A stretch of DNA of 64,000 nucleotides from Paragordius varius. Its lineage: Eukaryota; Animalia; Nematomorpha. Below, in pieces: positions 7,401-60,001 of the stretch. A model generated the notes under the pieces. The model searched no databases and was not told the DNA's origin. It saw only the letters and a program-made list of their open reading frames with translations. A program made the translations under genes and the position numbers. How positions within the stretch are numbered: the stretch's first letter is position 1; every line of letters begins with the position of its first letter. The DNA lies in the NCBI GenBank assembly GCA_964247055.1, contig OZ176052.1:1550001-1614000 (forward strand), read 5' to 3'.

Positions 7401-8287
7401 TATCATAAGGTATATAAATAGATACAAAAAATAAATATTTAAGTTTTACCTAATGGCTTCTATCTACGGTGATCTATTCATGAAAATTAAAAAACATATG
7501 GATATTAGTTCCAACCTTAAATGGAAGGTGTTGTAATAGGATGAAATGTGCCAGCATCGTAATTGCTTATTCTTTTATGTCCTCGCGACTGGGCAGGCAA
7601 GATTTGTTTATATCCTTATCATTTAATAAAAAAAAGGGGAATACACAATTTGACTAATGTGCCTTAATCTATCTTTTTGTAACTTTATGTTTGATTCTTT
7701 AAAACTAGTTGGTTGAATGACATGAATGAATTATATTAACTGTGTTTTTTAAATAAAATATATTTTACATATTATATATGTGTCTCTAAATTTGTCTACT
7801 TATATGATATGCGTTATTCTATTTATTGTCTATACCAGAATTTGATTGGAATCATATATATAGTAATAATAAAATCATTTTAATCACATAAGCTAGTGAT
7901 GAATTACATAAAGGATAGCATAAATGTTATAACTATTATTTTTAATAAATTATATTTCCCGAAGAATTTTTTTCATCCAAAACGTTTTTGATAAAATCTT
8001 CATAATGATGTACCAAATAATATGGTTGATAGTCCCGTCGACAAACAGTATCTTTTCTTAAAGCAAGTAACATACCATGACAAACTAAGGGCATTCCCAA
8101 ATCATTCTACATTACATAGGATTATTTAATTTTAGTAATAAATGTAAAAAAACTTAATAGCTATGTGTTGTGTTGTTTAAGATGATCATTCCTAATTTTT
8201 TTATATAACAGTAACGAAATCTATGCTTGGCCCCTTCATATTTTATATGGCTAAAAGGGTAGGTAATTAATTTATATGTCCTTAATA

Positions 8288-8660
8288 CTCCATTACCTTT
8301 GTGGTAGCTTTTATATCCCAGAGCGATTTGAAATTTGAATTTCTTAAAATATATCTAAGGTATTAGGCCGAATTAAAACATATGCTTTCTTTAAGCTCGT
8401 AAGCACATTATACAAAAAAACGATAAAACAATGTAAAATTGTTAAAAATATCCTCATACTTTATTGATGCGATATTTTTTCTAAAAAAACTTTATATCCC
8501 TAATGCAACAGACAAATAAATGTATATTATGGTTTGAAAATGTTAATTAAATTAATTAAGCTCTCATCAGGTTACATTTACTAGCAAAAACTTGATAATT
8601 GATTTCAAAATCAGCTGTTTAATTCAATCGTGTTGTTTTGGAGCTGTCCCATCAAGACTC
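8288..8660. repeat. Dispersed repeat family R2 (also ~14210-14520, ~24660-25010 and inverted at ~23520-23640, ~24250-24420)
   Basis: Shared core TTTTATATCCCA.AGCG...GGTATTAGGCCGAATT...ATCGCTAATACAACAG seen in several copies in both orientations; class not determined. Confidence 0.6.
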
Positions 8661-9390
8661 TAGACCGTAAGAAATATTAGTTTTTTATCTAATACAGGAG
8701 AACAATGTTGTTTAATAATTAAATTTTAACTAAAATAACCAAAAAGTAGTTTAATTACAAGATTCAACTACCTCCATAAGTCATCGTGGACAAAAAGTTG
8801 AAGGTAATGAAGGGTTAAGAATATTAAATTTTTCAATAAATTAAAATTGCAAAAAAAAACGTGGCGCACATAGTTTTTGGAATTCGTATGTTGGCAAATG
8901 GATTGCCGTAAAATAAATTAAAATTAAACTCATGAGATTTAATAAATAAATAGAAAAATATTTATAATTAAATTATTAAAATTTGTTTATAAATATAGAA
9001 TTTAACATTGTTAAAATTTAAAAAATTCATGCAAGTTCAAATGATTGCTATGTATTAATTACCGTTTAGTTTACATTTAGACTTTTAGAATTCAATGAAA
9101 TCAAAACTTAACATTTTACAAGAAGATGCAATCAATTTTAATAATTTAATACTTTTTGATAATTTTATAAAATAATAAGACATTGCCATTGGAATTAAAT
9201 TAAATAATTAATGCACGCAGAAGTTTGGAAATCTAAATAGTAACCGTTTCCAGAATATAAACATTTAAACAAATATGATGATTATATATTAAAAATCGTG
9301 ATAATTTAATATACAATCTTTGTTTAATATTTTATTATTTATATATATTTTTTATATTGATTTATTATTTGTCCTGATGTTTTATTGTTA

Positions 9391-9955
9391 ACTAGCGTAA
9401 ATCTCGTGTTGCTACGCAGCTTGAGGAAGTCCTTCCTCCGGGGGGGGGGGGGTCTTTTGAAAAAATGGACAATATCCACATATCCTTACCCAGCGGCTAT
9501 CATCAAAGAAACGCTTGACTAAAATTTTTGACTTTTAACAGGAAATACGTGGAATCCTTATTGAATTTTTACGGTCTCACACCTTGGGCGAAAAATAGAA
9601 TCAAAAAATTGACTTTGTTTTTTGAAAAAATGGCATTTTACGGGGGGAGCGGGTAAAAAGTGGCCTAAATTAAAAATGCGACCCGACTATGTTCGGCGCA
9701 ATCGAAAATAAGTAAACAAAAATTATATTTGAAATTGAATGGTCCAACACGTTTTCGGGATAATTTGTAGACTTGTGTTTTTTAAAAAAAACCATTTTTT
9801 ACACGGGGTGGGCCCGAACTGGGGCCTAATTTAAAAAAGGGCGAAGCTATTGCCGGGGCATTCAGTAATGATTATATTTTTTCGATATTTGGATTTGAAT
9901 GGGTTTACCGGAAACAAATCAAGCCAGCATTTTCCATTTTTATAAATATATAGAT
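9391..9955 (+). mobile_element. Short copy of the same Helentron/DINE-like element
   Basis: Starts ACTAGC...CTCGTGTTGCTACGC plus a poly-G tract, carries the conserved core, ends ...CATTTTTATAAATATATAGAT in T-rich flanks; no obvious TSD. Lies in intron 5 of pseudoprotease copy A. Confidence 0.65.
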
Positions 9956-12900
9956 TTTTTATTAATTTTTCTCCTGATTTATTATTAATTATTATTTTAA
10001 GCGATTCACCTTTTTTACTTACCAACCTAACATCTAAAAAAGAGGGTTATCTACTATTTCTTATAAGTCGTAATTATAAAAAAAAAATATAAAATGCTAA
10101 ATGACATGTAAATTAAAAGCCCCTTTTAGCCATCTCTAAAATAAAGATAGGGGACCAATATTAGCTATCGCTATCGTATAATTGTTCATATTTTTTAACG
10201 CTAGAAGTGTGATATCGATTGTAATAAATGATAATCCTGATAAGCAGACTAATATTGTTAGATATATATGTCCAGTGAAAACAAATATAAAATTATGATA
10301 TAAAACTTGATTTGATTACATAAAAAATGTAATTCCAAATAAATTATTTATCTAATAATAGTAATTTTAAGCTATTTTGTCATACTTTGTTTTTATTTAA
10401 TTTTAACAAATTGCTATTCGTTATCTCATTTAAGTGAGTAATTTGACAGTTTTAATTTTTTTTGATTATAAACACAACGACATCATAACAACAAAACACA
10501 TTATGGGTTGGGTTAAGGGTTTAAAACAAATGGCTTCTCAGGCCAAATTTTTGACTCAAAAGATCCGACGGGTTGCATTTAAAAAATATATAGGCATTAA
10601 TGAATATTTTATGAGCTCTTAAAAACATAAGACTGTAAAAATAAAAACATGATATATAACTACTATTTAGATCTTTTTAAGTACATAACCAATTGGAAAG
10701 GATTACAGAAATTTGTTTAAAAAATATCGATTTGTGAGATTATGCTTGCAAATAATGTAATTTCACATTATTTATTTAGTAATTTCAAAATTTTTCGCGA
10801 GCCGCATGTTTTGGATACCCTTGGGTTAAGACTCCTAGGAAATGATAAAAAATAATTTTTAAATTAATCAATACCTGGCATTCATAATCATAATCTTCAA
10901 TTTCCCTATTATCAACATCAACAATATCAGACCCGTTTTTAGATTTCAACTGGTCTCGGTGAATGGTGTGAAAAAAACGCTCCGAAGCTTAATTTATAAC
11001 TTTATCAGTTATGAAGAAAACTGCAAATGGATATATATATGTAAAAATGAATGAGATTTAACAACAATACATTTATAATTGCAAATTTTCGTTGTTTTAA
11101 TATAGAGATTACGAAAAATAATAATTAGTTATGAGATAGATATTAGAAATAATTTAAAATCAACAACAGGCATAAAAGTGTTTTTGAATGAATGTTATTT
11201 AAAAAAGCATTTTTTATATTCTACAAGGGTTCGCGATTAGATCTAAATCTAAATCATAAGTCATTAAACCCTTAGAGATTTATAATACAAATTTTTCATC
11301 TTACATGATGTTAGTTTATTGAAAATGCCTTGGTATACACCAAACCTATAAGCATGACACGGCGCACTAATATAGGCATTCATATTAAAAGGAAATTTTG
11401 ATTTGTATGTTGTCAAATCTGTAAAATCCGATGGAACTTCCAATGAAAAGGGTGGTACATCCTGCTCTTCGCTAAGTAGCAGTATGGATAAAGGATTGTT
11501 TTCAGGCCCATTAATAATACGTTCTACTTTAATGTTAAAATCTTTCAAAGTTGTTCCCCCTTGAATGGATATATCATCGGGACTAAAATAATATCAATAA
11601 TAATTATTGCTTTTATCCAACAATAAAATTGATAGAGAATGTAAATCGCTGGCTATGAAAAAAAATATTTAGAAAATATTATAATCGGTTATAAAATAAA
11701 TTAAGATTCTCATAGGAAATCATTTAATGAAGTTTTTGACATTTGGGATCATGGCATATCAATGAATGGCAATTAGGATTGTATAAATTTTTTTGGTAAA
11801 AGCCAGGTTTTAAATCAAAATAATATGTTATAATAAATAGAAACAATCATATTATGCACAAATATTTAGATGTAGGCTTGGAAAGTCTCACATTTTTAAA
11901 CTCAACTTGTTTTTTTGAATTCGCAAAAGTGTGAGATTCCGCCCTAAAAATTCACACATGTAAATTTATAAAAAATGCATAATTTAGATTAGCAAAATTG
12001 TTTGAAGTCTGGGGATGATAGTAAAAAATCATTATTGATAATATAAAACTTTATCTATATAACGATGATGTTCTTGAAGAATCCCACCTCAGGATTTAAA
12101 TATATTTCCAAAATAACAAAAATTTTTTTAAAACGAACAATTTTTTTTTAAGTTCTGAGGTGATAGAAATTTGCAGTAATTTACATTGAAAAAAATATAT
12201 TTCTCCACCATGCTTAAAAATCCATAAAATACGCTTTCAAATTTTGTTATAATTTAAAACTTTGAGGCATAGTATGCATTTTGTTAAAAAATAACTTTTT
12301 GAATATGTATTTTATAAATTTCAAACGTAAGCATATTAAAAGGCAAACGAAATCAAACAATCTAGTGCGTTGTCATTTCATTTTTTATCGGGCCAAACCT
12401 AATAAGCCAAGGGCCTCATACTAACTGCGATTCGCGTGTTAGACACCCCTGATATAGTATAATTAACTGTTTAATCAGAGAGATGTGTTAGTTTATTTAA
12501 TTATAATATTTTTCATACAATTCAAAGAATTAAAATAATATATAATACTTGGCGTCTTTCACGCACTCCTTTAGTGTTAAAATGTGTTTTCGGGAAACGT
12601 AACTCCCTTGACAGTTTTTTGATGGAAGCACTATTTTAACCTAATATAAATAGTCTGTTAATATAAACCCATTCTTAATGGTCGTAGAAATCAAATTTTT
12701 TGATAAATTTAATCACAATAACCTCAAAAAGAATAGAGATAGAATGTCATTTAGAGAAATAAACGTATTTTTGTTTATAATAGTTTCCTTTATCACAGTA
12801 ACAAACGTTACAAAAGAGGTAATATAACCTAAATCATTAATTTATGGGTAGCTTTAAAGCAGTTGTGTTTGATAAAAAAAAGTAACACATTACCGGGGTA

Positions 12901-13559
12901 GTTTATAGTTTTAAATATAAATGACTCAACAAGCATTTTAATGCCAAATTAAAATAAAAATATAGATTCCTTGTTGCTTTTTAAGCGTACGAAAAAATAT
13001 TATAAAAATAATCTAATGTAGAGATATTTTCTCCATCTCAAATTTTAAAACGCCAAGTTTTTCTGACTGCATCGTTTTGGCCAATACAAATATCTTATGG
13101 TTAAAAACCAAAATTTTACTTAAAAATAATTTTGATTGCATTTTTCAATAATTATTAATTTTAAAAGCAGCCGCTTGCAATTGCATTTGATACTATCTAA
13201 ATCTTGCCAAAAACTTACAAAACTATAAAAAATAAAAACTGTTTTATTAGCGGTTTATATAAATATTAAGTTTATCAATGAAAGTTTTTTTCAAATCAAA
13301 GTATATAAATATTAACGCAATATATAAAAAAATATAATTACATGGTTTGCTTGATTTTTATAATATTTGTCAAAACTAACAACATAGCTAGGAGTGTCCA
13401 TAAGAAAACCTAAAAAGAGAGGGTATTAAAAGGAGTTATTATGCGCATTAAACGTTAGCAATATAAAAGATTACCTCCTAAAGAATGACCAAAAAGCATG
13501 GAGATTGAAATTATTAGAAGAGTGAATTCCATCGTTAACTGCGAATTTATTAATGATTA

Positions 13560-13700
13560 TCAATCCCATTTAGAGCATCTTCTTATATAGTTTTTTTTAC
13601 AGGTATTTGATTATTTCGAAATCTTACGCAATCTTTAATACAATTTTAAATTTGGCCCTTTTCCAATAACGAATCTCGTGAAATGGGCTATCATTTTAAG
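13560..13700 (-). promoter_or_regulatory. Proximal promoter of pseudoprotease A (TATA-like box plus blocks conserved with copy B)
   Basis: Minus-strand TATATAAG about 50 bp upstream of ATG; blocks AATCTTACGCAATCTTTAAT and CAATAACGAATCTCGTGAAAT shared with 22820-22940. Confidence 0.55.
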
Positions 13701-15584
13701 GTTTCTAGGTTGATTGAATTATAGAGCCAGTTATACATTGATTGATTTTTAATGACAAATATTTAATTAAGCATGATCAAAATTAAAAAAAAACGATTTT
13801 AATACAGTTAAAAGCGTTAGCTTATTTAATTATGTATTATTTATAGGGCAGATTGTAAAATTTCACTATTTAAACGTTATAACATAATATAAACCAAATA
13901 TTGCATTGCATATCAAAATGCGTTTCCTAACTGGTTATAAACTAGATTATACCCCTAATAACCAGTTTCATTTATGAAATTGTCTATCTTTATATGTTCC
14001 CTTTTAAAAATTTTCAACCCAATCGAAGTATTGCTGTGATTTTCGTATTAGAGCTTTAGATCAGTCAAATCAAATTTTTTTGCCTATTTTCTCACACTCT
14101 CATAATAGTTTATTTTATTATTAAATGTTAGCAGTACATTTAATATATGAATCAATTAATAATTATTTTTCGAAAACTTAAATCTTGACATTCGCATTCC
14201 ATTTTATTAACTTTACCTTTTAAAGCAGTTTTATATCCCAAAGCGATTTCAAATTTGAATATCTCTACTCAAGGTATTAGGCCGAATTGAATATGCCTTT
14301 TTTAGCAGGCTCCAAATTTTTTTAAAAATGTAAAATTGCGAAAAAAGCTTCATCCCAAACTTTTTCGCTGACATTTTTTTCTCAAGATATTTTAAATCGC
14401 TAATACAACAGCCAAATTGATATTTAATAAATTTGGAAAACGTAAATGATTATAACCACAAACAGTTGAAACTTAAAATCAGCTGGTTATGCCAATCGTG
14501 TTTTGGAGCAAATTTTATTTGTATCCGGGCAATCATTCATTTTTAAAATATGGCCCACCTGATTTTTGGGGAAAATGCAGCCCCCAACAGTACTGTAGGG
14601 CATCTCCATATAGATAATTTTTGTTAATATATATCCTTAAATAATCTATTGCGCACAGTTTTTTTCAATATAATGGGAAAATGCGGTTATTTGATTTTAG
14701 CTATATGTTGAAAAAGTTATTTTATGCCAATGGTATATATTTCATAAATTCAATTATAAGGTAAAGGTATCCTTAAAGTGAGATAATCTGAATTAATCTG
14801 TGAGAAAAATATGCAATTAAATTTTTTACTAACGAGTTATATCACGACATGGTTTAACAGCCTCAGTATGGAATTTGAGCAACAAAAAATAAAACAGCAA
14901 TATCTGAATTGGGGCCAAAAATTTATAAGGGGCATATACTAAATACAATTAATATATAGTGGTTATTTGAAGTACAATCTAGTTTTCAAGAACAGTTAGG
15001 ATACGCTTTGTTCCAAAAATATTAGAATATGTTAAATAAGCCAGAGAGGCTCTTTTTCGCAGTACAGAACTGGATTTTCATAAAAAACTGCGACTGTATG
15101 CGCCCACTTTTGTACTGCTTTTTGCAATAAAAAAAATTTAATTTTTTATAAATATATATTAATTACCTTTAATTTATTCAAAAAATTTATTTTAGAATTT
15201 GATATAGTATCCACTGTAAATATAACCCCATATGTAAAGAAAGGGTTAATTTTCAGGAAAAAAACTAAGATTGGCCTATTTATAATCGGTTAATATTTAA
15301 TTTATGCTCGAATTATACATAAAATTGAATTTTGGATTGGTCACTGCTTATAATCAGCCTTTCGCACAGTGACGAAACTGTAAATTACGGACAGTAAGAT
15401 TCAGGCTCATGGCTCTTTCACCCAGGGCTTCGCAAAAAGAGGTGCCTCAAAATTTAAAATTAACAAAATAAATTTATGATATTTTAATAAATGTTTCAAG
15501 TTAGAAAAATTTTTGTTATAATTATCAAATGGAAAATTGTATAGATATTGTTATTCCCGTAACATATTATTTAAAATTTATTAA

Positions 15585-16147
15585 ATACTCGTGCTGCTAC
15601 GCAACCCGGGGGGGGGGGGTGCTATTTGAAAAAAGGGAGAATAAAATAAACCACATATGTGGAATTTTTCGAAACATTATTTAATATCTATCTCATAGGA
15701 ATTTTAAAACGGTGCATTCATACTAATTTATTGTTTACTTGGGAGAAAAATAGAGTCAAAAAATTATTTTTGTGGACTTTGTTTTTTTAAAAAATGGCAT
15801 TTTACGGGGAGAGCGGGTAAAAGGAGGGTCTAAATTAAAAATGCGAGCCAACTATGTTCGGCGCAATCGAAAATAAGTAAACAAAAATTATATTTGAAAT
15901 TGAATGGTCCAACACGTTCTCCGGAAAATTGTCTCAAAAACACGATTTTGTGGACTTCTGTTTTCAAAAAAAACCCGTTTTTCATACGGGGTGGGCCCGA
16001 ACTGGGAGCCTATTTCAAAAAAAGGGCGAAGCTATTGTCGGGGCATTCATTAATGATTTTTTTTCGATATTTGGATTTGAATGGGTTACCGGTTTTCCGG
16101 AAACAGATCACAAAGCCAGCATTTTCCATTTTTATAAATATATAGAT
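15585..16147 (+). mobile_element. Helentron/DINE-like element copy
   Basis: CTCGTGCTGCTACGC plus poly-G 5' end, conserved core, CCGGTTTTCCGG subterminal hairpin, TATAGAT end. Confidence 0.65.
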
Positions 16148-16364
16148 TACCATAAATAATGTTTTATTATCCATATATTTATAAACATCCTATACATATG
16201 ATAGATAAATAAATAATAAAACAACAAACTAATACGATTTTATGTTTAAAATCAATAAAGTCTGATTGATCATTTAATTGTCTCGTTTGAATATTGAGAT
16301 AGACAATTTTATTTGAAATGATCATAATATATTTTTGATTTTATAAGCAATTTTATGCGGCACA

Positions 16365-17259
16365 TAGTCTCATATTCTGAAATTTGGCTCCTAAGGCATG
16401 CTGTATCGATATGATGGCGCAGTTGTAGGCGGGTAGCCCACTACCCAGAGGCCAATATAAAAATGTAGTTAGATAAAAGAATTTGCCTTTGTACCTAGAA
16501 TCATCATTCATTCCTAATAGTTTATGGAAGAATGGATTCAAAACTAAATAATAGTTCAATGATAGCGCATTTTTAGGGAGTAAAGGGCCTTTTTAATGCT
16601 TATTTCAAAAAATCCGCTCGACTTAAATTTTTAACTTTTTACGGGTAATAATTTAAGCAGCTATTGAACGCATATGGCCTGATAGGTTTTCTGAAGTTTA
16701 GCCCCAAAAGCACGCTCTTTTGATATGACGGGTCAGTTTTTCGCGGGCTCCTTACCCAGCAGCTATCATGAAAGAAACGCTTGACTAAAAGTTTTGTCTT
16801 TTAACAGGGAATACGTGGAATCTTTATTTAATTTTTACGGTCTCATACCTTGGGCGAAAAATAGAATCAAAAAATTATTTTTGTGGACTTTGTTTTTTGA
16901 AAAAAATGGCATTTTACGGGGGAAGCGGGTAAAAAGAGGGCCTAAGTTAAAAAAGCGAGACGACTATGTTCGGCGCAATCGAAAATAAGTAAACAAAAAT
17001 CATATTTGCAATTGAATGGTCCAACACGTTTTCGGAAAATTGTCTCAAAGACACGATTTTTGTGGACTTCTGTTTTCAAAAAAAACCGTTTTTACACGGG
17101 GTGGGCCCGAACTGGGGGCCTAATTTAAAAAAAGGGCGAAGCTATTGTCGGGGCATTCATTAATGATTATTTTTTTTCGATATTTGGATTTGAATGGGTC
17201 TACCGGTTTTCCGGTACCAGATCACAAAGCCAGCATTTTTCATTTTTATAAATATAGAT
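16365..17259 (+). mobile_element. Helentron/DINE-like element copy with part of the tandem array, head-to-tail with the previous copy
   Basis: 16365-16800 matches the reverse complement of array units at ~5860-6920; core 16800-17230; TACCGG-TTTT-CCGGTA hairpin; ends AATATAGAT. Confidence 0.65.
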
Positions 17260-18856
17260 GACATGATTTCAAAAATAACAATTTTTCGTATTAAAAAATA
17301 AGAGTTTTTTACGTTTTCTACAATCATTAGGTGAAAGGTATGATATTTCTTAATTCTTTTCCTAAACTTTAATATTTATTAGTTTTCTTATTTTTTGCAT
17401 AAACAAATTTGAGATATTTTATTGAACTGTACAAACTATTTTGAAGCGGAAACGGTACAACGCCTTATAAAACAAAACCATTTTTCTAAATTCGATGATT
17501 GTGAACTATACTAGAGGTTTAGAATTTTAATTTAAAGGTTTGTTTGGTTGCAAATTTAGGTGAATTTTTGTAAAAAACACAATTTTTATTTAACATAAAT
17601 TTAAAAACGAACGAATATTTTAATCGAAATTCTAATAGAAAGGCTTATCGAATTATATATTTATAATATATAAATGTTATAACATCTCAACCGTTTACAT
17701 GGTTTCCATCATGCACAAAATAATATGAAGTATGCTTCAACAAAATTTTGCTAAAAATTAGATTTTTGAAAGTATGCATTTTTTAACTATTTAGTTGATA
17801 TCAAAATTTAGCACATATGTAAAATTATTGCACAATGTCGGAATTTTGCGTTTATTTCAAGAGAACAGTCCATTTTAAAAGAGCCAAAAAATTTAAGATT
17901 TTCAGAGCCCACATCAAAAAATTTTAAAAATATTGTTTTGCTTTTTATATGTAGTTTACGTAATATTTTAGTGATATTTTTTGAAATATAGCATTCAGCC
18001 TTTTCCAAAAAAAAATATTTGAAAAAGGGCACTTTTTGCAATTTTATACGGGGCACTTACCACAAAACTGTAAAAAACTTTCTTTAAAATTCGTAAAGGT
18101 ATAACCAAAAGCACCATGATAATCCTGTTATTTTCCTATCTGAATATGTATATGTATATATAATTCATCAGGATATTTTTTTGTGGAAACTGTGTAATAT
18201 ACCACATCGATGGTGTAAAAACAGACAAAGTATGTTTTAATTTTGTACTGCGTCCAAGTTTAAAATATCTGGTCACATGAATATATGACGACAGCGTTTG
18301 ATAACAATCGCATACGAGTTTCGTGTGCTTGGTATGTTTTAGGTGTTCAACACAAATGGATTGGCGGGCCGCATTTTTAACCCAAAAAATTAGAGAGTCG
18401 CTAACTTAAGACTGTAAAATGCAACATGATACTAAAAAAATTCTAGTTCTTGCCAATTATGTACACAGACTTAATAAAATTGCTCAGAAATATTAATTTT
18501 ACTAAGTTTTGTGGGCATATTTTTTCAAATTATTGAGTTCTAATAAGTGTCAGATGGCCGGGTGTTGAAAAGCCCTGTTTTAATCTACTTGTTGCATTGG
18601 TTATTTTTTAATTTAGTTTTCAGGGTTAATGAAGGCGAACGCGATATCCGCATTTGTAAATTTTAAAATTTGGGGTTTTCATAATACATGTCAATTAATT
18701 TCACAATTTAAAAAATGCGTTATTATATTTATTATCTATACCCATAATTTGATTGGAATCATCATATAATAAAAAATTTTAATCACATAAACTAGCGATA
18801 AATAAAAGATAAAGCTTTTAATTATATTTTTAATATATTTAATTTCCCGAATGTTT

Positions 18857-21800
18857 TTATTCTTCCATGGCGTTTTTGATAAAATCTTGATATTTATGAA
18901 CCAAATAATATGGTTGCTTGTCTCTTTGACATACAGTATCTTTTCTTAGAGCTAATAATCTATCATGGCACACCAAGGGCATTCCCAAGTCATTCTATAC
19001 CAAAGGAAATTACAATCATGCTTGAGGTGACAATTATAATTGTTAATATACAGTAGTGTATGGCATAAAACATTATTAGTCCATAAATTAAAAAGTTTTT
19101 TTAAAAAAAACAAGCCTAGTTGTATATAGACATGTCCATAAGATCCCCTTGTTTTTTAAAAGAAACATTTTTTATTCTTTTATGGACTAATATTGTTTTA
19201 TGCCATACGCAACTGTATTATCCCTGACTGTGATTGCTTATAATAAGAATAAGCAGGTTAATTTTTTCATATGTTTATGTAAAACAAATGTAAATTAGAG
19301 GTAGAAAACATAAATTATCTTTGATTTTCGAAATTTAACAATTATTTTGTCCCTCTAATTAATAATATTAGCAAGCTTAGAAACTATTTAAGTGACTCCG
19401 TTTTTTTATTTAGTTGTACCATATATTTTCAGTAATTATTTTAATTAATTTGATTTGATTGTCTTTATAATTTAACACCGATTCAAATTGGGGTATCTAA
19501 ATACCCCAGGCATTATTTAAATTGATATTTTTAGAAAACTACTGAAGGAAAAGGTTCCAATTTAAATTTATACTTTTAGACCAATAAAAATTATATAAAT
19601 AAGCCAAAATATCTAAATAAAATTTAGTTTTGAAAAAAAAGTTCCGTATCAAATTACTTGGACGCCATTTTTATTTTACAACATTTTTGCAAAATATCGT
19701 GCTTATTTGATTCTAAGACTAAAATTAAGTTTTGATACAAACCAAAAAAAAGTGGTATATTTTGCAGTATTTTGCTTATACACACATGGCTAAATTTTTA
19801 CCTTTTGGTTTCCCTGAATAAGTAATATCAAGTATTTTTAAATCAAAATTTTATTATATTTCCGTTCATTAATGTTGTGCAATTTGCCATCGTTTTAATT
19901 TATTCCATATCTGAATTATTTATATTTAAACAAGCCTTGGGTACTTAACTACTTTGATTTGAATCGAGGGACTGAAAAAAAGTCTTTGTATCCAAGTGTT
20001 AAACAAGTTATCAATATAAATATACAGCCATACCAACAAAAGACATTACAGGTTAATTCATAGCATACGAAAAAAATTAACCGTTTTAAATTATTTTTAG
20101 CATTATATTACTTGGCATTCATAATCATATTCTTCAATTTGTCTATTTTCAACTTCAACAATATTAGACCCGTTGTTGGAATGCAAATTACTTCGGTAAA
20201 GGGCGTGAAAATGTCGCTCGGACTCCTGATTTATCTCTTTATCACTTATGTGGAAAACTGTATAAGATGTTTAAAAAAATATATTTATATTATTGCATTA
20301 TAAAACATACATCACTTAACAAAGAAATTTTAAACATATTTATTAAACATGGTTTATTAAAAGTCAAAACCTATAATGTTTCTAACACCCATGTCCTTTG
20401 TTAATAATCCACCCTCTGGCAATTCTAAATTAATACTCTATGTCGTTAACGGGTTTGTTTATATATTATAAATATTCTATAGCTTTTTAGGCGTATAGGG
20501 AGTAAAAAGTTTCCTCATCTAAAACTGAGAAGCCGCCATATTTTTTAAACTTTTTTGGTAATATATATATGATAAAGAAATCAAAAAAATTGCATTTAAA
20601 ATGTTTTTGACGCATATTCACACTAGTTTTCAGTATTTATTAATTTATATCAGCTTGTTTCAGAGTGATTTGATTGCTATAATAAGTCAAAAACTGTACA
20701 AATTTAAAGTTTTATCTATTATAGTAATTTTCATTTTTTTATAATCACTGAAATACAAGGTTACAACTCTAGGATTGCGGATACCCTGATATGTAGATTA
20801 TATTATTATTTTAAATTGAAAAGCGATGAGTTAATTATGATATATATATTTAAGCATTTAAGCTACGACGATTTGTTTGAAGAATTTTTAACCATAGGCA
20901 TATAATTCTAAGAAATAACTGTTGTCATAAAGGAAAATGTCAAAAAAACTTACATGATGTCAATTTATTCAAAACTCCTTGATGCACACCAAATCTATAA
21001 ACATCGCATGGTGCAATGATATAGGCATTCATAAGAGGATATTTTACAGGAGTTGATAAATCCGAAAAATCGGTTGGAACTTCCAGAGAATAGGTTGGCA
21101 CGTCCTGCTCTTCGCTTAGGAGAAGTAGGGATAAAGGATTATTCTCAGGCCCATTAATGATACGTTTTACTTTGATGTTAAAATCTTTCAAAGGCTTTCC
21201 CCCTTGGATCGATATAGCATCGGAGCTAAAGTAATTATATACCACCATATTGTTATAATCAACAATAGATACCATTATTAATTAAAAAACAAGACTTTAG
21301 TAAAATGCAACATTTTTTATCAAGAGAATTTATAATTTTAAAAATATTTTTTGACAATTAGTTATTTTTGGGGGATTTTAGCGTTGAATGCGAAAATAGA
21401 ATAATATAATATGCTCAAAATATTTATTGTCTTAAAATGTGATATTTTTCATAGGAATTATACAATGTGTAAAAATTGGAAATATATAATGTAGTTTTTG
21501 TAGACGCGTTTTAATTATGAATGTAAATTGTATCAAAAATATTTTGGACTTTGATTCTTCAATTAAACAAGGAAGTACCTTGGGAATCATATTACATTTT
21601 CCAATCCAAATTTTTTGCAGTTATACAAATTATATTTTTTTTAATTTTTTTAAAAGCGTACGAAATACCAAAAATTAATTCTATAATTTTTTGATTGAAT
21701 ATTTAACCAAAATAATTAATGATTAGTAATACAACATCTTTTGATTTATATGCTATTTTTTGCACACATGATTGATACTGGAAAATGCAATTCTATTTAT

Positions 21801-22795
21801 TACTTTTAATATTTTAGAATGGAAAGGAAATATATCATTAAAAGTATGGGGAATATATAAAATTTAAATTAGACTTGACGCCTTCCACGCACTCCTTTAA
21901 GGTCAAGATGTGCTTTCGGGACACGTAACTTCCTTGACAATTTTTTGATGGTAGCACTATTTTAACCTAAAATATACGAAATTGGAAAAATAATTACTGG
22001 ATAAATTTTGTTTAATAAAATTAGTCATAAGAAATATATGAAATTTAAAAGTGTAATGGGGGTGAAATGTTAAGAGTTATAAATGCAATTATATAAAAAG
22101 TTTTCGTCGTATAGAAGTAGTACTTTAAAAATTATTAGTAATCAATAAGAAGGGCGTGTTGACAAATATATTTACATAAGTTTAGATATAATATCATAAA
22201 TTTATTTATTTATTGCATTCTCTTATAAATGCCCAAAATATAGTAAAAAATTAACCCAAAATGTATCTTACCATAAAAATCCACAAAATTCCGCATTTAA
22301 ATACGTATCAACAATAAATTCATCGAATGTTAACATAAAAATTGCTATAATATTCTCAAAATTTAGCATCACAACAAAATATCCATCAAATTAAGCCTAT
22401 GTTAATCTCTCAATCCTCTTTCATATATGGACTAAATTTTGGAGAGAAGTTTTTTTACATTTGTTAAACCATTTATTTCTTTTATATGACTAAAAATTAC
22501 TTAACATATATTAAAATGCATACTGTAAATTTAAAATCCATAAATAAACCAAAAATAAAACGAATATATTCAATAATTATACATGGTTTGGTTGATCTTT
22601 ATAGTATTTATCGTATTTAGAAATGTAGGTAGGAGTACCAACACTATAATATCCTAAAAGAGGTAAAACAATTTGATAATAAAAAATTGTAAAGCACACA
22701 TAAAATATATAAACTAGGTAAAAAATACTCCTACCTCCCAACGAATGTCCAAAAAGTAGAGATATGATGACAAGTATTAAAAGAGATGATTCCAT
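18857..22795 (-). CDS. Secreted trypsin-like serine protease homolog, copy B (S1 fold, triad lost), 259 aa
   Basis: GT-AG exons 22795-22735, 22653-22583, 21966-21875, 21225-20954, 20257-20112, 18994-18857 (780 nt, open). Signal peptide; CQGSYVSRKHILTLKEC (for CGG..HVLTAAHC), NNPLSLLLL (for NDIALL), CDVYRFG (for C..SGWG), CQNDLGMPLVC (for CQGDSGGPLVC). Confidence 0.85.
19472..20002. mobile_element. TTAA-flanked MITE, piggyBac-like (related copies ~25614-26145 and ~47180-47737)
   Basis: TTAA at 19472-19475 and 19999-20002; termini CAC...GTG; the right end reads TTAACACTTGGAT on the minus strand; internal homology among three copies. Confidence 0.55.
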
Positions 22796-22819: not shown

Positions 22820-22940
22820 TTATTTCCATTTAGAGGCTTTCCTTTTATATGGTTTTTTTCGCTTCAAAATCTTACGCAATCTTTAATTTGGTGTCCTTTT
22901 AACAATAACGAATCTCGTGAAATCGGTTATCATTTGAGGT
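22820..22940 (-). promoter_or_regulatory. Proximal promoter of pseudoprotease B
   Basis: Minus-strand TATAAAAG at ~22842-22849; same conserved blocks as copy A, including a C/EBP-like TTACGCAAT. Confidence 0.55.
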
Positions 22941-25499
22941 TTTTAGGTCGATCTAATTTTAACACTTTAAAATGTGTCAATTAAATTATCTATGGCAAAT
23001 ATTTAATTAAGCATGATTAAATTAAAATTAACCATCCTACTACCATTAAACAGCTTTAAATTATTTGATCATATATTTATATAATTACATATAATTTTAT
23101 CCCTATTTGACAAGATATAATAACCTAACATTGCATTTTTTATGACAAAGCATGACCTAAGTGATGCCCTTAAACTGCAAATTATTTTTAAAGATTTCTT
23201 ATTACCCGGTTGAAAATATTTGTGTTCCAATTAAATATTGCTATTTTATCATCTATTGCTATATATTCCGTCACTTTAATGCATGTCATAATACCCATGA
23301 TTTAGCTCGAGTCAATTAAATTTTATTATATCAGATTTTAATAGTTTTATGTATTATATTTAAAAATTACATGATCATTACAATCAAATTATTATATATA
23401 TTAAATCATTTTATATGTAGAGCTAATCAAAAAACCACATTTTTTACATTCCATTAAATATATTAATAATTATTGGAGCAAACAGAACAAAAATTAATAT
23501 TTTTTATCGATCAGGATATTTTTTTATTGTGTTATATCACTTTGCCAGTTGTATTAGCGATTTAAAAAAATTCAAAGAAAAATATAGCGGCAAAAAAGTT
23601 TGATATGGGATTTTTTACAGTTTACCTTTTCAAATTTTTTTATTAATCATGCGGTTTAGAGTATACTAACTATTTTCATCCTACTTTTTTATTTATTTGG
23701 AGAAGATTACATTTCGTAAAAGTTTTGTCTGCAGAGCTTATACTCATTATATACTGCTTTGAAAGTTGCTTGGTTTCTATTTATAATCATCTTTATTATT
23801 AAAAAAGAAATTTTTTGGGGATTAGCTGGCTTTACAGTCCAGAATAGGGATGCAATACAACACTTAAAAACCCAGTAACTTTAAGATCAATAAAAAAAAA
23901 TTGCTGCTGAAAGGTACACTAAAAATTGAAATTATATGGACAAAGCGTAAATATGTAAAGACAAATATTTTTATCTAAAAGACAACCATAATTTTTAAAA
24001 CCTTAATTTTTCTCAGATAAGCTATTTAGTTACAATTATAAAATATAGGATTGATCATTGTAATATATATCCCTTCACATTTGCCATTTAAAACAATGAG
24101 TTATATTGAAATAAATTAGGATTTTAAAAGTATGGTTGTCTTTTAGAAAAAAATATTTGTCTTTTTATTTTTACGTTTTGTCCTTAAAATTTCAGTTTTT
24201 ACTGTATTTTAAAAGCATTCCAAGGTTAATTATTTACATTTTTTAACCATACACATCTATTTTGCCTGTTGTTATAGTGATTTACAAAAATGGCAGCGAA
24301 AAAGATTGAGATGAAGACATTTTTACAATTTTACAATTTTTAAACTTCTTTGGAATTACGCCAAGGCTAAAGGCATATATATGAATTTAGCTCAAAAATA
24401 CCTTTTAGATATTTAAATTTAATAATAATATGGGGTAAACTACCCCAACTAGTATTAAGTGTTGAATTTATTCTTAAAAAAATATTCGGCATTTTTTGAT
24501 TCAAAATCGCATAATTAATACCTAATTTATTTGTAATTATGAAAGTGTGAAAAACTAAGTTTTTTTATTCTATAAAGATTAATAATTAACACTCTTTTAC
24601 CTTTTCGGGTATTGATCAGAGCTATTATTAAAGCATATCACAATGTAATATAACATTCCATTACCTTTCGCGTATTTTATATCCCAGAGCGTGGAAATTA
24701 AACGTTTTAAAAAGTATTCAAGATATTAGCCAAATTTAGAAATATGCTTCCTTTAGCCTTTTAGGCTCATTATTCATTTTTTTAAGAAAAATGTAAAATT
24801 GTAAACAATCCTCTTCTCAAACTCCCCCTTCCCCATTTTCTCTATAATTTTTTTATATCGCTAATGCAACAGTCAAATAAATGTACATTATGATTACATC
24901 ATGTAAAAGTTCAACTTTAAAAACTTTTTGGTGACATTTTACCAGCAAAAGCTCGGTTTGTTTTTATTTTAATATCCGCTGTTCGTTTTCATCGCGTATC
25001 TAATACATGGCAGATTTTAAAATTAAAATTTAGCTAAAACAATTTCCATAAATGTAGTTTATGTAAAAAATTCAGCCCTGGGATATACTACCCCATTCTG
25101 TATTTTAGGGCAAAAAGTGAGGTAATGAAGTGATAACATTGAGCCAACATTATAATGACCATTTAAGCGCACTTTTCTAAAAAAAATAATTTGAACTGAA
25201 ATAATCTCCATCTTAAACTTTTTGAGATTTTAATTAGCACTAAAAAAGTTGGTACATAAACACATAATATGAACAAAGAAACTCAATTTACACTGCTTTT
25301 ATTTCACTGCGTCAATTGGGGGTATAAATTTCGATGAAATATATATATATATATATATATAAATTTTGATAGGAAAAATCAGGATTTCTGGCGCTGGCCC
25401 TTACATGTGATAAAAAGTTATTTACACTTTTGTGGTAACTGCTCCAGATCAGAAAACCAACGCACTTTTTTGCTGTATATTTTTTTATGAAAGCTAATT

Positions 25500-27159: not shown

Positions 27160-39715
<12,556 letters not shown>

Positions 39716-46068: not shown

Positions 46069-48010
46069 GATTCACATGGTGGTTTAACTCAAAAATATAA
46101 AGTCATGTTTATTTGCTAATCCAATTATCGATACAAAATTGATATCAAATTTTCAAACCTTGATATAGTTAACAAATTTAAGTACCCCTGATTATATGCA
46201 AAATATACAAACATGAGTTTACAAAAATGTCTATCATTTAAACAGTTCTTGTATTGAAGTGCCGTAAGCCTTACTGCCATGCTATTTCGGCGTCGGATAA
46301 CAGATATAGTTAACACTGTAATATATACGACATAAAGATAAGTTTAAAATTTTTTTACTTTTTGCCACCGTGGTCTACCCGATAATTATTTTTAAAATCA
46401 ATGTAGATAAAATCATTTCCCAATCAATTGAAACGTTTTGCCACATCGAATCCAGTTAATCGAAATTCACATCAATCAAAACGATCTCTTAACAATGGGA
46501 TAGCAGCTATTTATTTGCTTCGATTCAAATTAAGGTAGTTAAATAACCCAGGCCTGTTAAAAATAAAGTACCTCAAAATCTAAAAGGAATCGAAGCCATG
46601 GCAAATGTTTGTTAAATAACATTAAACGAAATATTAAAAAATCACTCAAAAATATTTGATATCAAAAAGTAAATTTATAGTCAAGTTAATATGTGTCCCT
46701 TAGCAAATTTAAAAATAATACAAATTTAACTCCTTGTCTGTTTCTAACAATGATTTCAAAAATATAAACAGATATTTTGCAAAAATGTTGTAAAATAAAA
46801 ATGGCCTCGAAGTAGTTTGATATGTAACTTTTTTCAAAATACATTTTATTTATTTTCGGCTTCTTTATATAATATTTATCAAATAGCATAAATTTAAATT
46901 GAAGCCGTTTTTTCATATCATCTATCATTTAAGATTATATTACACCAAATTATCAAACCTTAATACTCCTATACGCTCATTAAAAAATTTCTTATTTTGC
47001 TGGCACTAAAACCAAAACTTGGGTTTTTTAGCGGTTGGCAGAAACAAAAATTTTAGCAAGGAAAATATTTTATTGGAGTACAATTGACGCTATTTAGAGA
47101 TCATGCATTATGAGACATTCAATGGACTGATATGAAATATTTTATTTTATATTTGTCAATTATGCGCTTATTAGAATTGATGGGACCCCTTTACTTCGAT
47201 TGAGGTATCTAAATAGGACAGATAATATTAAAATTCATAATTAAAAAAAACTATTGAAAGAAACGGTTAAAATTTAATGCTATCCTAATAAAATTTATAT
47301 ATATACCTATATATCTAAATAAAATTTAGTTATAAAAATAAGTTCCGTATCAAAATACTTGGACGTCATGTTTATTTAACAACATTTTCGCAAAATATCG
47401 TTGTCATTTTGTTTAGGACTAAAATTAAGTTTACCTTTTTATTAAAACCACATTTAACATTGATGTAAACAGAAAAAGTGGTATATTTTGCATTATTTTT
47501 ATATTTAGCTTATAAACATATGTCATAGTGGTTAAATTTTTAGCTTTGGGTTTAACCTCTGAATAAATAATATCGAGTAATTGAGGGAATTTTTTTTATA
47601 ATCGGTTGATTATAAGTCCAATCCTTTGCCATGGTTTAAGTTTATATAATATTTTTTAAAATGTGGGTATTTTGAATAAGCCTGGGCTATCTAACTACCC
47701 CAATAACTGAAATAAATGTGTTGTATTCAAGTGTTAACACAAAAGCTCAAACTTAGGGCCATGGACTGGCTCATTCACCAATTTTGATAATCCATGTGTT
47801 TAAGACTTCCTCATCCTGTTGGGATGGATGTATTTTTGAGCGCGGTTGTTTTGTAATTAAGGTTATTACACAAGCCAATATCTCGACAACTAGAAAGAAT
47901 TTTGGAATTTAAAAACTGTATTAGCCTATATAAAGTAAATTTAATATATGTAAATGGTAGGTTATGAAAAAATATTATTCGGGCAATGGAATTAATTACT
48001 TTGAAAGGGG

Positions 48011-48470
48011 TGTGTAACCTGAATCGGGATAGCCAAAGATTTCTTGCTCTCTCCATGTCATTTCGATCCTGGGGAAGTTGCATCCACTTTGTGCGCAGGT
48101 TAGAACACAGTGGAGCAACTTCCTGCATTATTTTGGTCACAGTACCCCGTTCTATACCGTAGTCCTGGGCTACTCCTGATTGGTAGCCATGATCCGATAG
48201 ATATCTTATAAAGATCTCCACCCGCTCTCTATAGGACATGGATCCGTTGCGCAATTTTCTTGTTCCAGGTGGGTATATTTCATTATTAATAAAATGTAAT
48301 GCATTTGTTGTATTGCGTAATAATATCGGCATATATATGTGGGAATTGTTTGGCGATTTCTTATTTTGCGTTTTCGGTTACCAAAGTATATTAACATACA
48401 TTTTATGCATAAAATAAAACATGTATTTCACATTTCTTAAGCAGCAACCAACATACGGCCCTTGCAACCA
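48011..48470 (-). pseudogene. Inverted 5' fragment of the same Harbinger transposase
   Basis: ORF 47811-48332 matches 50857-51177 up to ...WLSRFRL, then runs into unrelated sequence at ~48010. Confidence 0.9.
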
Positions 48471-50665: not shown

Positions 50666-51896
50666 ATGACAAAATTTTTCTTATATCTCAAGGCCAGAGA
50701 TGTCCGACTTAAATGTTTGCAAGGGCCGCATGTTGGTTGCTGCTTAAGAAATGTGAAATACATGTTTTATTTTATGCATAAAATGTATGTTAATATACTT
50801 TTAAGAGGCAACCGAAAACGCAAAATAAGAAATCGCCGAACAATTCCCACATATGATATGCCGATATTATTACGCAATACAACAAATACATTAGATTTTA
50901 TTACTAATGAAATATACCCACCTGGAACAAGAAAATTGCGCAACGGATCCATGTCCTATAGAGAGCGGGTGGAGATATTTATAAGATATCTATCGGATCA
51001 TGGCTACCAATCAGGAGTAACCCAGGACTTTGGTATAGAACAGAGTAGTGTGACCAAAATAATGCAGGAAGTTGCTCCACTGTGTTCTAGCCTGCGCACA
51101 TAGTAAATGCAACTTCCCCAGGATCGAAATGACATGGAGAGAGCTAGAAATCTTTGGCTATCCCGATTCAGGCTACCTTATATTGTGGATGCAATTGATT
51201 GCACTCATATTGAAATAAATCAGCCTACACAATTTCCCCAAGATTATATAAACCGTAAAGGTTACTTCTCGTTGAACGTCCAGGTCACTGTTGACGCCTC
51301 AGAAAAATTTACCTCTATAGAGGTTAATTCACCGGGCGGCATACATGATGCCAGGATCTATAGCAACTCTCTTGTTAGATCGATCCTGGAAGATGTGGCA
51401 GAATATGGAAGTCTGTTGGGTGATAGTGGTTATGGTATTCAAAAAACCATAATCACACCAATAAAGACACCCACAGCAGCGCATGAGATAAGGTACAATT
51501 ATCTAGTGCAGAGCAAAGAACGCATGTTGGTAGAGCGTGTGCTCGGTCAATGGAAGAGGGTATTCCCCATCCTAGGGAACAAGATCCGTGTCAAGACGGA
51601 AATGGTACCTGACGTGATACAATCATGTGGGGTATTGTTCAATATAGGTATGTTTTTGATATGCCCATTTTACAACATTTTTACATATATCGATATGAAA
51701 TATGTTCATTTTTGTTTGTACTCCATATCAAATTATTTTTAATATTATGGGGAAGTACCTAAAAGCCATCGGTCATATTGAAGATAGCGAATTTGTAGGC
51801 CCATCAGAAGATGAGACAGGAACAATCTCAAGTAGTCGGCAGGCAGGAGTCGATAGAAATGAAATCATACGATATATTATTATAAATAATTTATGA
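50666..51896 (+). pseudogene. Harbinger (HARBI1-like) DDE transposase pseudogene
   Basis: RYLSDHGYQSG, IVDAIDCTHI, YINRKGYFSLNVQ, GGIHDARI, LLGDSGYG, ERMLVERVLGQWKRVF; TAG TAA at 51101-51106 where the inverted copy reads AAG TGG; the acceptor of the late intron is mutated here (ATGG) but intact (ATAG) in the inverted copy near 53515. Confidence 0.9.
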
Positions 51897-57959: not shown

Positions 57960-59890
57960 CAAAACATTCTTATATAATAAAATGGTGGGTAAAAGCATTA
58001 TGTTTAAGGTGTGGGTAATGTAAGTTGTGGTAAAAATAATTGAGGAATGTGAGCAGTTGATGTGGATATAAGGTAAGGTATGATGATAAATGTTAGGAGA
58101 CATTGTATAGAGATGTAGTGTAGGGGAATATAATTGAATAAAATAATATGATATAAAAAGCATCATTCAAAAAGTAAGATCTTTTTAATGAGTTTAGGGT
58201 TATATGTTTGTTGAGGTATGATGTAAAATGTTAGGTGATTTGGTAGTATGGATAGGATCAAATGTAATGTAAGGGAATATGGGTAAAAATTTAAAAAAAT
58301 GCAAAAAATATATTTATATATATTTAATAAAATTTATCTAAAATGAATAGAGATTTGATGTGTTTCAGAATGTTAATGTAAAGTGAGGTGTGATAATAAA
58401 TGTTAGGGGATATCGTATGGATAGGGATTTAATGTAAATTAAGTGAATAAAATTTAAATAAAACAATATATTTATAAATATAAAAAAAATATCCAAAAGG
58501 AATGAGGTTTGTTTGAGGATGTTTTGTTAGGTGAAATGTAATGTTAAATGGTAGGTAATTTTGTAGGAAGCGAGTTTGGAGATGAGTTGATGTAAAGTAA
58601 GAGAATATGGGAATATCAATTAATAAAATAAAAAAATATTAAATATAGATAATTTTTCAAAAAAGTATATAGAATAGGTGACTTTAGGTGTGATGAGGTA
58701 AAATAGTGGGTAATTTTGTATAGGGATGTAATGTAAAGGATTGAATTTAGTGATATAATTTAATAAAATAAAAAATATATTAATATATAATTAAAAACAT
58801 TCAATAATGAAATTTAATGGTCAAGAGGATGTATAAGTAGGGTGAAATGTCGTGAGATGTTAAATGGTAGGTGATTTTGTAAGGATAGAGAATGGAAGAT
58901 ATGTATTGATGTAATGTATGGGGAGAATATAGGAATATAATTTTAAATAAAGTAAAAAATAATTATAGTCAAAATAAATTGGAGACAAGTGATTTGATAT
59001 GTGGGTGAGTTATGTAAGGTAAGGTGTGAGGGAATTCCGTAAGATGTGTTGATGTAATATAAGGTAATGTGGGAATAAAATTTAAATAAAATAAATTAAT
59101 CAATATAAGTATAAAATATAGAATCCAAAAAAGTATAGAAGATATGTGATGATGTGTAAATGAGTAAGATGTAAGGTTAGGTGTGGAAGAATGGTAAGGT
59201 AATTTCATAAGGTTGAATTGAGTATAAAAAGTATCCAAAAAATTAAAAATATGTGATGAATGGTGAGTTTGAAGGTGTTTATGTAATGTAGAGATATGTT
59301 ATGATGTAATATGTAAGGTAAGATGAGGTGGGATGGTGGAAAGAGATGTATGTTGATGCAATGTAAGGGAATATAAATCAAATAGTATAGAAAATAAAAG
59401 GTATCCAAAAAATAAAAAAATATGTGATGAATGGTGAGTTTGAACATGTATAAGTAATGTAGTGGGATGTGATGATAAATGTTAAGTGATTTTGTAAGGA
59501 TGGAGAATGGAGATGTTTAGATATAAATTAAGGGAATATAATTTAAATAAAATAAAAGTAACGTGTCCAAAAAATAATGATGTATGTAAGGTGGGTATAG
59601 TATGATAAAATAAATCTTGGGTGATTTTGTAAGGATAGAGAATGGAAGATATGTATGTTGATGTAATGTAAGGATGCGTAAAATATAAAAAAGTATGATG
59701 TCCAAAATGTAAATAGGACATGTGATGTGTGTGGGTGTGTATGTGTAAGGTGAGTTGAGTTGAGGTTTGATGTAAAGGAATGTATTTCGTAGAATAAGGA
59801 GAAAAAAAAATATGAATATATGGAATGTAAAAATAGAATATATTATATATATAAATGGATAATATAAATATATATAGTGTAAGTTTGATA
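57960..59890. repeat. Degenerate C-poor tandem array, roughly 150-170-bp period
   Basis: Recurrent AAATG.TAGGTGATTTTGTAAGGATAGAGAATGG..GATGTAATGTAAGG motif at ~58228, 58398, 58547, 58700, 58862, 59478, 59612; the plus strand is nearly devoid of C. Confidence 0.75.
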
Positions 59891-60001
59891 GATTTGGATT
59901 CATTGGACACACTCCAACCAATGTCATACACGGGTTTCCAAATAAAAGACCCCTAAACAAAAAAAATAAGTTCGATTATATTGTCAAAAAGTTTTTTTTA
60001 T

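Follow-up and report, generated by a model that had tools for sequence, protein, structure and literature searches.

A family of probably secreted, catalytically dead trypsin homologues in the genome of Paragordius varius

The 64,000-nucleotide stretch of Paragordius varius DNA considered here (contig OZ176052.1 of assembly GCA_964247055.1, positions 1,550,001 to 1,614,000; hereafter the window) is AT-rich eukaryotic DNA with about 27% G+C. On its minus strand lie two tandem genes—copy A and copy B—that belong to a family of 12 loci in the 110.56-Mb, 44-contig assembly that we searched. We consider it likely that this family encodes secreted, disulfide-stabilised homologues of the S1 (trypsin-fold) serine peptidases that do not cut, that catalysis was lost before the family expanded, and that its members have since been kept by purifying selection, most likely as non-catalytic binders.

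Comparison of the two halves of the region with each other using BLAST recovered six collinear blocks, five of them on exons. Translation and reading of the exon junctions resolved these into two six-exon paralogs on the same strand, copy A (7942-13532) and copy B (18857-22795). Copy B comprises 259 codons (777 nt) with no internal stop, assembled from exons of 61, 71, 92, 272, 146 and 135 nt; its introns range from 81 to 1117 nt and all five are bounded by GT and AG. Copy A has the same exon structure and intron phases, and splice donors across the family are weak (GT followed by A or T). Both copies open with a hydrophobic, signal-peptide-like exon ending in GHSLG/G; first exons of this kind, with about 20 codons, a hydrophobic core and a small-residue end (SLG/G), are present in 10 loci. 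The hydrophobic N-terminal exon, a conserved N-x-S sequon and six cysteines together suggest that the proteins are secreted.

All three residues of the catalytic triad have been replaced. Profile alignment places the Glu of the motif TLKEC opposite His57; inspection of NNPLS against the NDIAL of trypsins puts Pro at the Asp102 position; and Leu (Arg in one copy) stands in for Ser195 within NDLGMP, where the oxyanion-hole Gly193 has also become Asn. In an alignment of the exon 6 profile with kallikrein, the 214-216 strand is likewise altered (Ser214 to Lys, Trp215 absent, Gly216 to Asp), and no IVGG activation site was found in exon 2. The triad, Gly193 and IVGG N-terminus of an active S1 serine peptidase are thus all absent from the family, within which Glu57, Asp194, Asn193 and Lys56 are invariant.

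The cysteines, on the other hand, have been kept. Six of them, at positions 54, 70, 148, 213, 223 and 236 of copy B (spacings 16, 78, 65, 10 and 13), are invariant across the paralogs, and three of the spacings match the canonical S1 values exactly (C42-C58, 16; C58-C136, 78; C191-C201, 10). Disulfide pairing as 42-58, 136-201 and 191-220 is predicted. The mature product of copy B would be slightly acidic, with 27 Lys and Arg residues and 31 Asp and Glu residues. A first-pass annotation of the window had described two six-exon paralogs with signal peptides, a 259-residue product of copy B, the motifs TLKEC, NNPLS and NDLGMP, six retained cysteines, no IVGG and the loss of all three catalytic residues. 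Each of these points was seen again in our models, and the motifs (with CQ ahead of NDLGMP) and the missing IVGG were seen in both copies; its three disulfides fit the canonical S1 positions, while the pairing itself is still a prediction.

Descent from S1 peptidases is supported by several kinds of comparison. From the assembly we took 13 loci with trypsin-profile matches—12 genuine trypsin genes and one further locus, L038, described below—the exons of which were aligned for use as a comparison set. Using hhalign, family exon 3 matched the exons that carry His57 in nine real trypsin genes (P=4.5e-7, probability 92.6%), pairing C42 through C58 with their trypsin counterparts. Family exon 6 matched the last exons of real trypsin genes (P=2.5e-6, probability 88.7%), with NDLGMPLVC opposite GDSGGPLVC and with C220 and the C-terminal helix also aligned. 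Mismatched exon pairs, run as controls, returned P=0.5 and 0.7. Against all solved structures, the 15 best matches to the exon 6 profile, with E values of 0.019 to 0.15, were protease domains of plasma kallikrein; the alignment runs along DSGGPLVC...C220...WI and sits at the correct place in the domain (kallikrein residues 187-238). The exon 3 profile matched collagenase from the insect Hypoderma at CGGSLI..ILTAAHC (residues 30-49, E 1.3). When the exon 3 profile was searched against the whole genome in six frames, the two best matches outside the family lay at or overlapped PF00089-matched exons of two real trypsin genes.

Gene structure tells the same story. The family and the real trypsin genes of this genome have in common an intron directly before V31, a phase 1 intron after the C136..GWG strand, a phase 2 intron three to four codons after C58 (eight of nine trypsin genes) and a phase 0 intron exactly before residue 193, which is G193 in the trypsins (ten trypsin genes). 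Given the S1 ancestry that these matches, spacings and introns support, we infer a two-barrel S1 fold.

The remaining locus of the comparison set, L038, lies at about 10.430 Mb on contig 3 (10427000-10433500, minus strand), inside the main cluster of the family and on the same strand. It is more canonical than the family: it scores 23.1 bits against PF00089, above the Pfam trypsin threshold, and aligns with family exon 3 at P=1e-5, but it too is catalytically dead, with LTLADC at His57 and CENELGSPLL at Ser195. It shares with the family ILTL..C around position 57 and, at 193-198, N-[DE]-L-G-x-P. It differs in retaining the C168-C182 pair and ASWG, in having Asp instead of Glu at position 57 and in having no intron ahead of residue 193. 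L038 is likely to be an evolutionary intermediate that links the family to ordinary trypsins.

Six-frame genome searches with exons 3, 4 and 6 recovered the same 12 loci, plus one fragment. Two loci lie in the window, one each on contigs 4, 5 and 8, and seven on contig 3, where they form a cluster at 10.33-10.55 Mb in the neighbourhood of real trypsin genes (10.19, 10.59 and 10.76 Mb). Two family copies are near-identical. Open exons and conserved splice sites were found in copy B and in at least seven other loci. Degraded members comprise a contig 3 copy at 10.333 Mb with a stop in exon 4 and a partial copy on contig 5; the fragment is a frameshifted exon 6 remnant (contig 8, 2350061-2350208) about 18 kb downstream of the intact contig 8 copy.

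Relatives were also sought beyond this genome. When 1.84 billion representative proteins were searched in full by HMMER, using the family profile of exon 4, no credible relative was found, although exon 4 is the least trypsin-like part of the protein and short profiles miss distant kin. The sole match, to a bacterial protein with carboxypeptidase-regulatory, Ig-like and dockerin repeats (E 3.7e-4), was rejected as spurious. The exon 4 open frame, used in a word-indexed protein search whose length filter leaves out relatives of 259 residues, returned nothing, as did a metagenome scan for related loci; a language-model search for look-alikes of exon 4 gave nothing relevant (best score 0.80). The profile search shows no close, characterised orthologue, while distant relatives may remain, and on present sequence evidence the family is found only in this genome.

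Purifying selection is evident across the family. Nei-Gojobori estimates of the ratio of nonsynonymous to synonymous substitution rates (dN/dS) were 0.22 to 0.23 for copy A against copy B, at a synonymous rate (dS) of 0.62 to 0.67, and 0.12-0.37 in all 28 pairs of eight copies, at dS values from 0.5 to above 2, that is, into saturation. By exon, dN/dS was 0.05 for exon 3, 0.21 for exon 4, 0.50 for exon 5 and 0.24 for exon 6. In exon 3 the proportion of synonymous sites that differ (pS) was 0.62, against 0.06 for nonsynonymous sites (pN), and because pS is so high, the conservation of this exon reflects selection rather than gene conversion. Its first 27 codons in copies A and B differ at nine nucleotides, all synonymous, exactly as the first-pass annotation had counted. 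The replaced residues have themselves been kept through synonymous codon changes (Glu57 as GAG or GAA, Pro102 as CCT or CCC, Asn193 as AAT or AAC, Leu195 as TTG, TTA or CTG), which indicates that catalysis was lost before the family expanded and that the new residues are under selection in their own right. With dN/dS well below 1, substantial dS and intact frames and splice sites, the family has the properties of selected pseudoenzymes, copy A excepted.

Several observations weigh against this account. Pfam recognised no family in any of the six single exons at E values up to 10, and a six-frame scan of the genome with PF00089 gave 134 exon matches, none of them at a family locus. Exons 4 and 5 did not match trypsin exons significantly (hhalign P=0.078 and 0.31), although the exon 4 alignment was still collinear, with the VKRII..GP and LSLLLL strands and C..RFG each opposite the corresponding trypsin segment; nor did the exon 4 profile match any solved structure. 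Finally, copy A has a premature stop, and the 10.333-Mb and contig 5 loci are degraded. The first-pass annotation had proposed to check its trypsin-fold assignment by comparing the 259-residue product of copy B with PF00089; the searches made exon by exon and over the genome in six frames gave no such match, and the assignment itself is sustained by the exon 3 and exon 6 profiles, the kallikrein structures, the cysteine spacing and the shared introns. Its other expectations—purifying selection, with dN/dS not near 1, a multi-copy family genome-wide and no close, well-characterised orthologue—agree with our results.

The stop in copy A, which the first-pass annotation does not mention, is an in-frame TAA at codon 176 (10989-10991), which is read if exon 5 starts at the acceptor used by all other members (CAG or TAG followed by TTTTC, TTTTA or TTTTT). 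It could be bypassed through an AG created beside the TAA, on its downstream side (10987-10988, with the exon resuming at 10986), or by removal of a 21-nt GT...AG segment (10980-11000), but acceptor contexts are poor for both routes. When differences between copies A and B were polarised with two outgroups, 18 changes fell on A and 10 on B, a mild and non-significant excess that fits a recent stop in copy A. Recent disablement and non-standard splicing appear about equally probable for this copy, with splicing out of the 21-nt segment a side possibility. The coding sequence of copy B, by contrast, looks functional. The functional tandem pair of the first-pass annotation thus stands for copy B, which is intact, and is in doubt for copy A, so the window may hold one working gene and one recently disabled one.

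The pattern of conservation suggests how such proteins might work. Constraint is strongest around the former cleft, in the segments that form its lining (exon 3, NNP, CQNDLGMP and RKD..CQR), whereas the paralogs differ in loops 110-135, 145-180 and 202-208, which suggests a common contact face with variable surroundings. Under the model that we favour, trypsin genes were duplicated, catalysis was lost before the family expanded and purifying selection has acted since. The protein would be exported and act outside the cell as a non-catalytic binder, with the remodelled active-site region as its conserved contact surface and the variable loops tuning specificity, and its partner—a protease, an inhibitor or a host factor—would be held rather than cleaved. 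That partner could be the worm's own protease or inhibitor or a host factor, between which the sequence does not discriminate.

A special case of this model, which we regard as rather unlikely, makes the proteins host-directed parasite effectors, that is, secreted decoys that block cascades of an arthropod host such as prophenoloxidase activation or complement-like factors. Scabies-mite SMIPP-S proteins and the protease homologue Vn50 of parasitoid-wasp venom are described as acting in this way. A multi-copy, lineage-restricted, probably secreted and dead S1 family with variable loops would suit such a role, as would the failure of the exon 4 profile search and the metagenome scan to detect relatives elsewhere. 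Yet dN/dS is close to 0.2, with no diversifying selection at the level tested, unlike many host-facing effectors, and dead S1 homologues that act purely internally are widespread in animals. A still more specific version, in which lineage-specific decoys of an insect-parasitic horsehair worm use the conserved former active-site face to silence protease-driven immune cascades of the host while the variable loops follow host targets, seems slightly less probable again.

That the loci are merely decaying, functionless trypsin duplicates, which resemble one another only through recent duplication, is very unlikely. The stop in copy A, the exon 4 stop at 10.333 Mb, the partial contig 5 copy and the frameshifted contig 8 remnant are what such decay would leave behind. 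However, the copies are separated by large synonymous distances and yet show low dN/dS in 28 of 28 pairs, exon 3 differs at a far smaller proportion of nonsynonymous than synonymous sites, and at least eight loci conserve the splice sites, the cysteines and the residues that took the place of the triad. Decay may hold for copy A alone, at the roughly even chance given above, and does not fit the family.

That short motifs in a protein of some other fold resemble S1 peptidases by chance is scarcely credible: the lack of per-exon Pfam matches, the non-significant exons 4 and 5 and the irrelevant results of the exon 4 look-alike search speak for it, but two exons, independently of each other, pair with the right trypsin exons in collinear order at P of about 1e-6, with clean negative controls, the cysteine spacings of 16, 78 and 10 are those of S1 numbering, intron positions and phases agree with those of real trypsin genes, and the bridging dead trypsin L038 sits inside the cluster. 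Equally improbable is that the remodelled site (Glu57, Asp194, Asn193, Lys56) supports a new catalytic activity rather than mere binding, since, although the replaced positions are selected rather than drifting and their exon has the lowest dN/dS, position 195 offers no nucleophile (it is Leu, or in one copy Arg) and the 214-216 strand and oxyanion hole are altered; we are aware of no S1-fold protein with a catalytic site remodelled in this way.

Coordinates of both gene models and their 5' flanks are collected in Table 1. The two flanks share 73% identity over about 230 nt and have no further match in the genome; this block may represent a shared promoter. A roughly 400-nt dispersed repeat, whose copies are 62-92% identical and which is either short or resembles a miniature inverted-repeat transposable element, occurs at 9483-9879, 15758-16064 and 16749-17217; one copy lies in intron 5 of copy A, the length of which (2768 nt) is partly due to this insertion, and two lie between the genes.

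Table 1. Exons and 5' flanks of copies A and B (window coordinates; UTR, untranslated region).
Feature	Position	Strand	Remarks
Copy B exon 1	22735..22795	-	ATG and signal-peptide-like hydrophobic segment; phase 1 end at GT donor
Copy B exon 2	22583..22653	-	N-terminal segment to ...QPNH, in place of the IVGG...PWQ region; no IVGG
Copy B exon 3	21875..21966	-	C42...C58 segment; Glu at His57 position (TLKEC); most constrained exon
Copy B exon 4	20954..21225	-	Strand NNPLSLLLL (Pro at Asp102 position, by inspection), variable loop, C136, RFG replacing GWG
Copy B exon 5	20112..20257	-	Least constrained; conserved N-x-S sequon; ends ...DYECQ (C191-Q192)
Copy B exon 6 and stop codon	18857..18994	-	NDLGMPLVC (Gly193 to Asn, Ser195 to Leu), C201, C220, C-terminal helix ...DFIK
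Copy A exon 1	13475..13532	-	Signal-peptide-like
Copy A exon 2	13342..13409	-	
Copy A exon 3	12549..12640	-	First 27 codons: protein identical to copy B, nine synonymous differences
Copy A exon 4	11305..11582	-	
Copy A exon 5	10875..11020	-	Bounds from family-conserved acceptor; contains in-frame TAA (10989-10991)
Copy A exon 6 and stop codon	7942..8106	-	
5' flank of copy B	22863..23077	-	Partner of 13615-13838; candidate promoter or 5' UTR
5' flank of copy A	13615..13838	-	Partner of 22863-23077

Elsewhere in the window, exons on the plus strand between 28850 and 35450 (for example 31873-32030 and 33246-33410) resemble what we take to be a glycyl-tRNA synthetase gene; Pfam returned nothing for the one such exon searched. 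An open frame for a Harbinger/PIF-type DDE transposase lies at 51107-51739 on the plus strand (PF13359, E 1.1e-28), with an inverted partial copy upstream on the minus strand (47814-48332). From about 58000 to 60000 the plus strand is almost free of C (GC skew 0.75 over 58001-60000), built of degenerate A/G/T-rich units that form no clean tandem array. An Rfam scan of the window found nothing.

In the wider genome, (TTAGGG)n was seen at the ends of contigs 3, 4 and 8 (loci L022-L026), with the 3' end repeats followed by a G-rich repeat in contig 3 and by an AAAGT-type repeat in contig 8; contigs 3 and 8 apparently extend from one telomere to the other. Locus L048 (contig 1, 2480603-2481016, minus strand) holds a mitochondrial ribosomal protein L16-like gene whose profile match spans a TAA between two open frames, at about 1672-1674 of the locus; this TAA could belong to a very short intron.

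Proteins of this general kind are familiar from other animals. The SMIPP-S proteins, inactivated protease paralogues of the scabies mite, are secreted, multi-copy S1 homologues with mutated catalytic residues that derive from active trypsin-like genes of the same genome and are said to bind rather than cut. The present family is similarly multi-copy, secreted-looking and dead, but no sequence relationship to them beyond the S1 fold was found, and it is too divergent for Pfam at the exon level and has its triad and Gly193 replaced by a fixed set of residues (Glu, Pro, Leu and Asn, with Arg195 in one copy).

Arthropod serine protease homologues are secreted S1-fold proteins that lack the catalytic Ser and serve as cofactors or competitors in protease cascades, among them the clip-domain cofactors of prophenoloxidase activation and the wasp venom protein Vn50. 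The family differs from these in that it lacks a clip or any other additional domain, shows no conserved site for activation cleavage and has lost all three triad residues, whereas typical serine protease homologues lose mainly Ser195. Such homologues can be numerous in one genome: a Tenebrio study counts 125 of 269 S1 genes as serine protease homologues (PMC11172050).

In haptoglobin, HGF/MSP, azurocidin and protein Z, the S1 fold has been reused as a binding module after loss of triad residues. These vertebrate homologues mostly carry extra domains or are strongly cationic, whereas the family is single-domain and slightly acidic—which also sets it apart from cationic antimicrobial S1 homologues—and no orthology with them was found. 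Dead S1 homologues are common in animals, and the family is a very divergent case of a well-known kind.

With splice donors that are weak and exons that Pfam does not recognise singly, the genes may be overlooked or wrongly labelled by automatic annotation. Triad replacements held by selection across old paralogs point to a re-used cleft rather than simple decay, and offer a clear surface to examine. In a phylum where no host-interaction factors have been characterised, the family would, if the animal parasitises arthropods, provide a list of candidates for that role.

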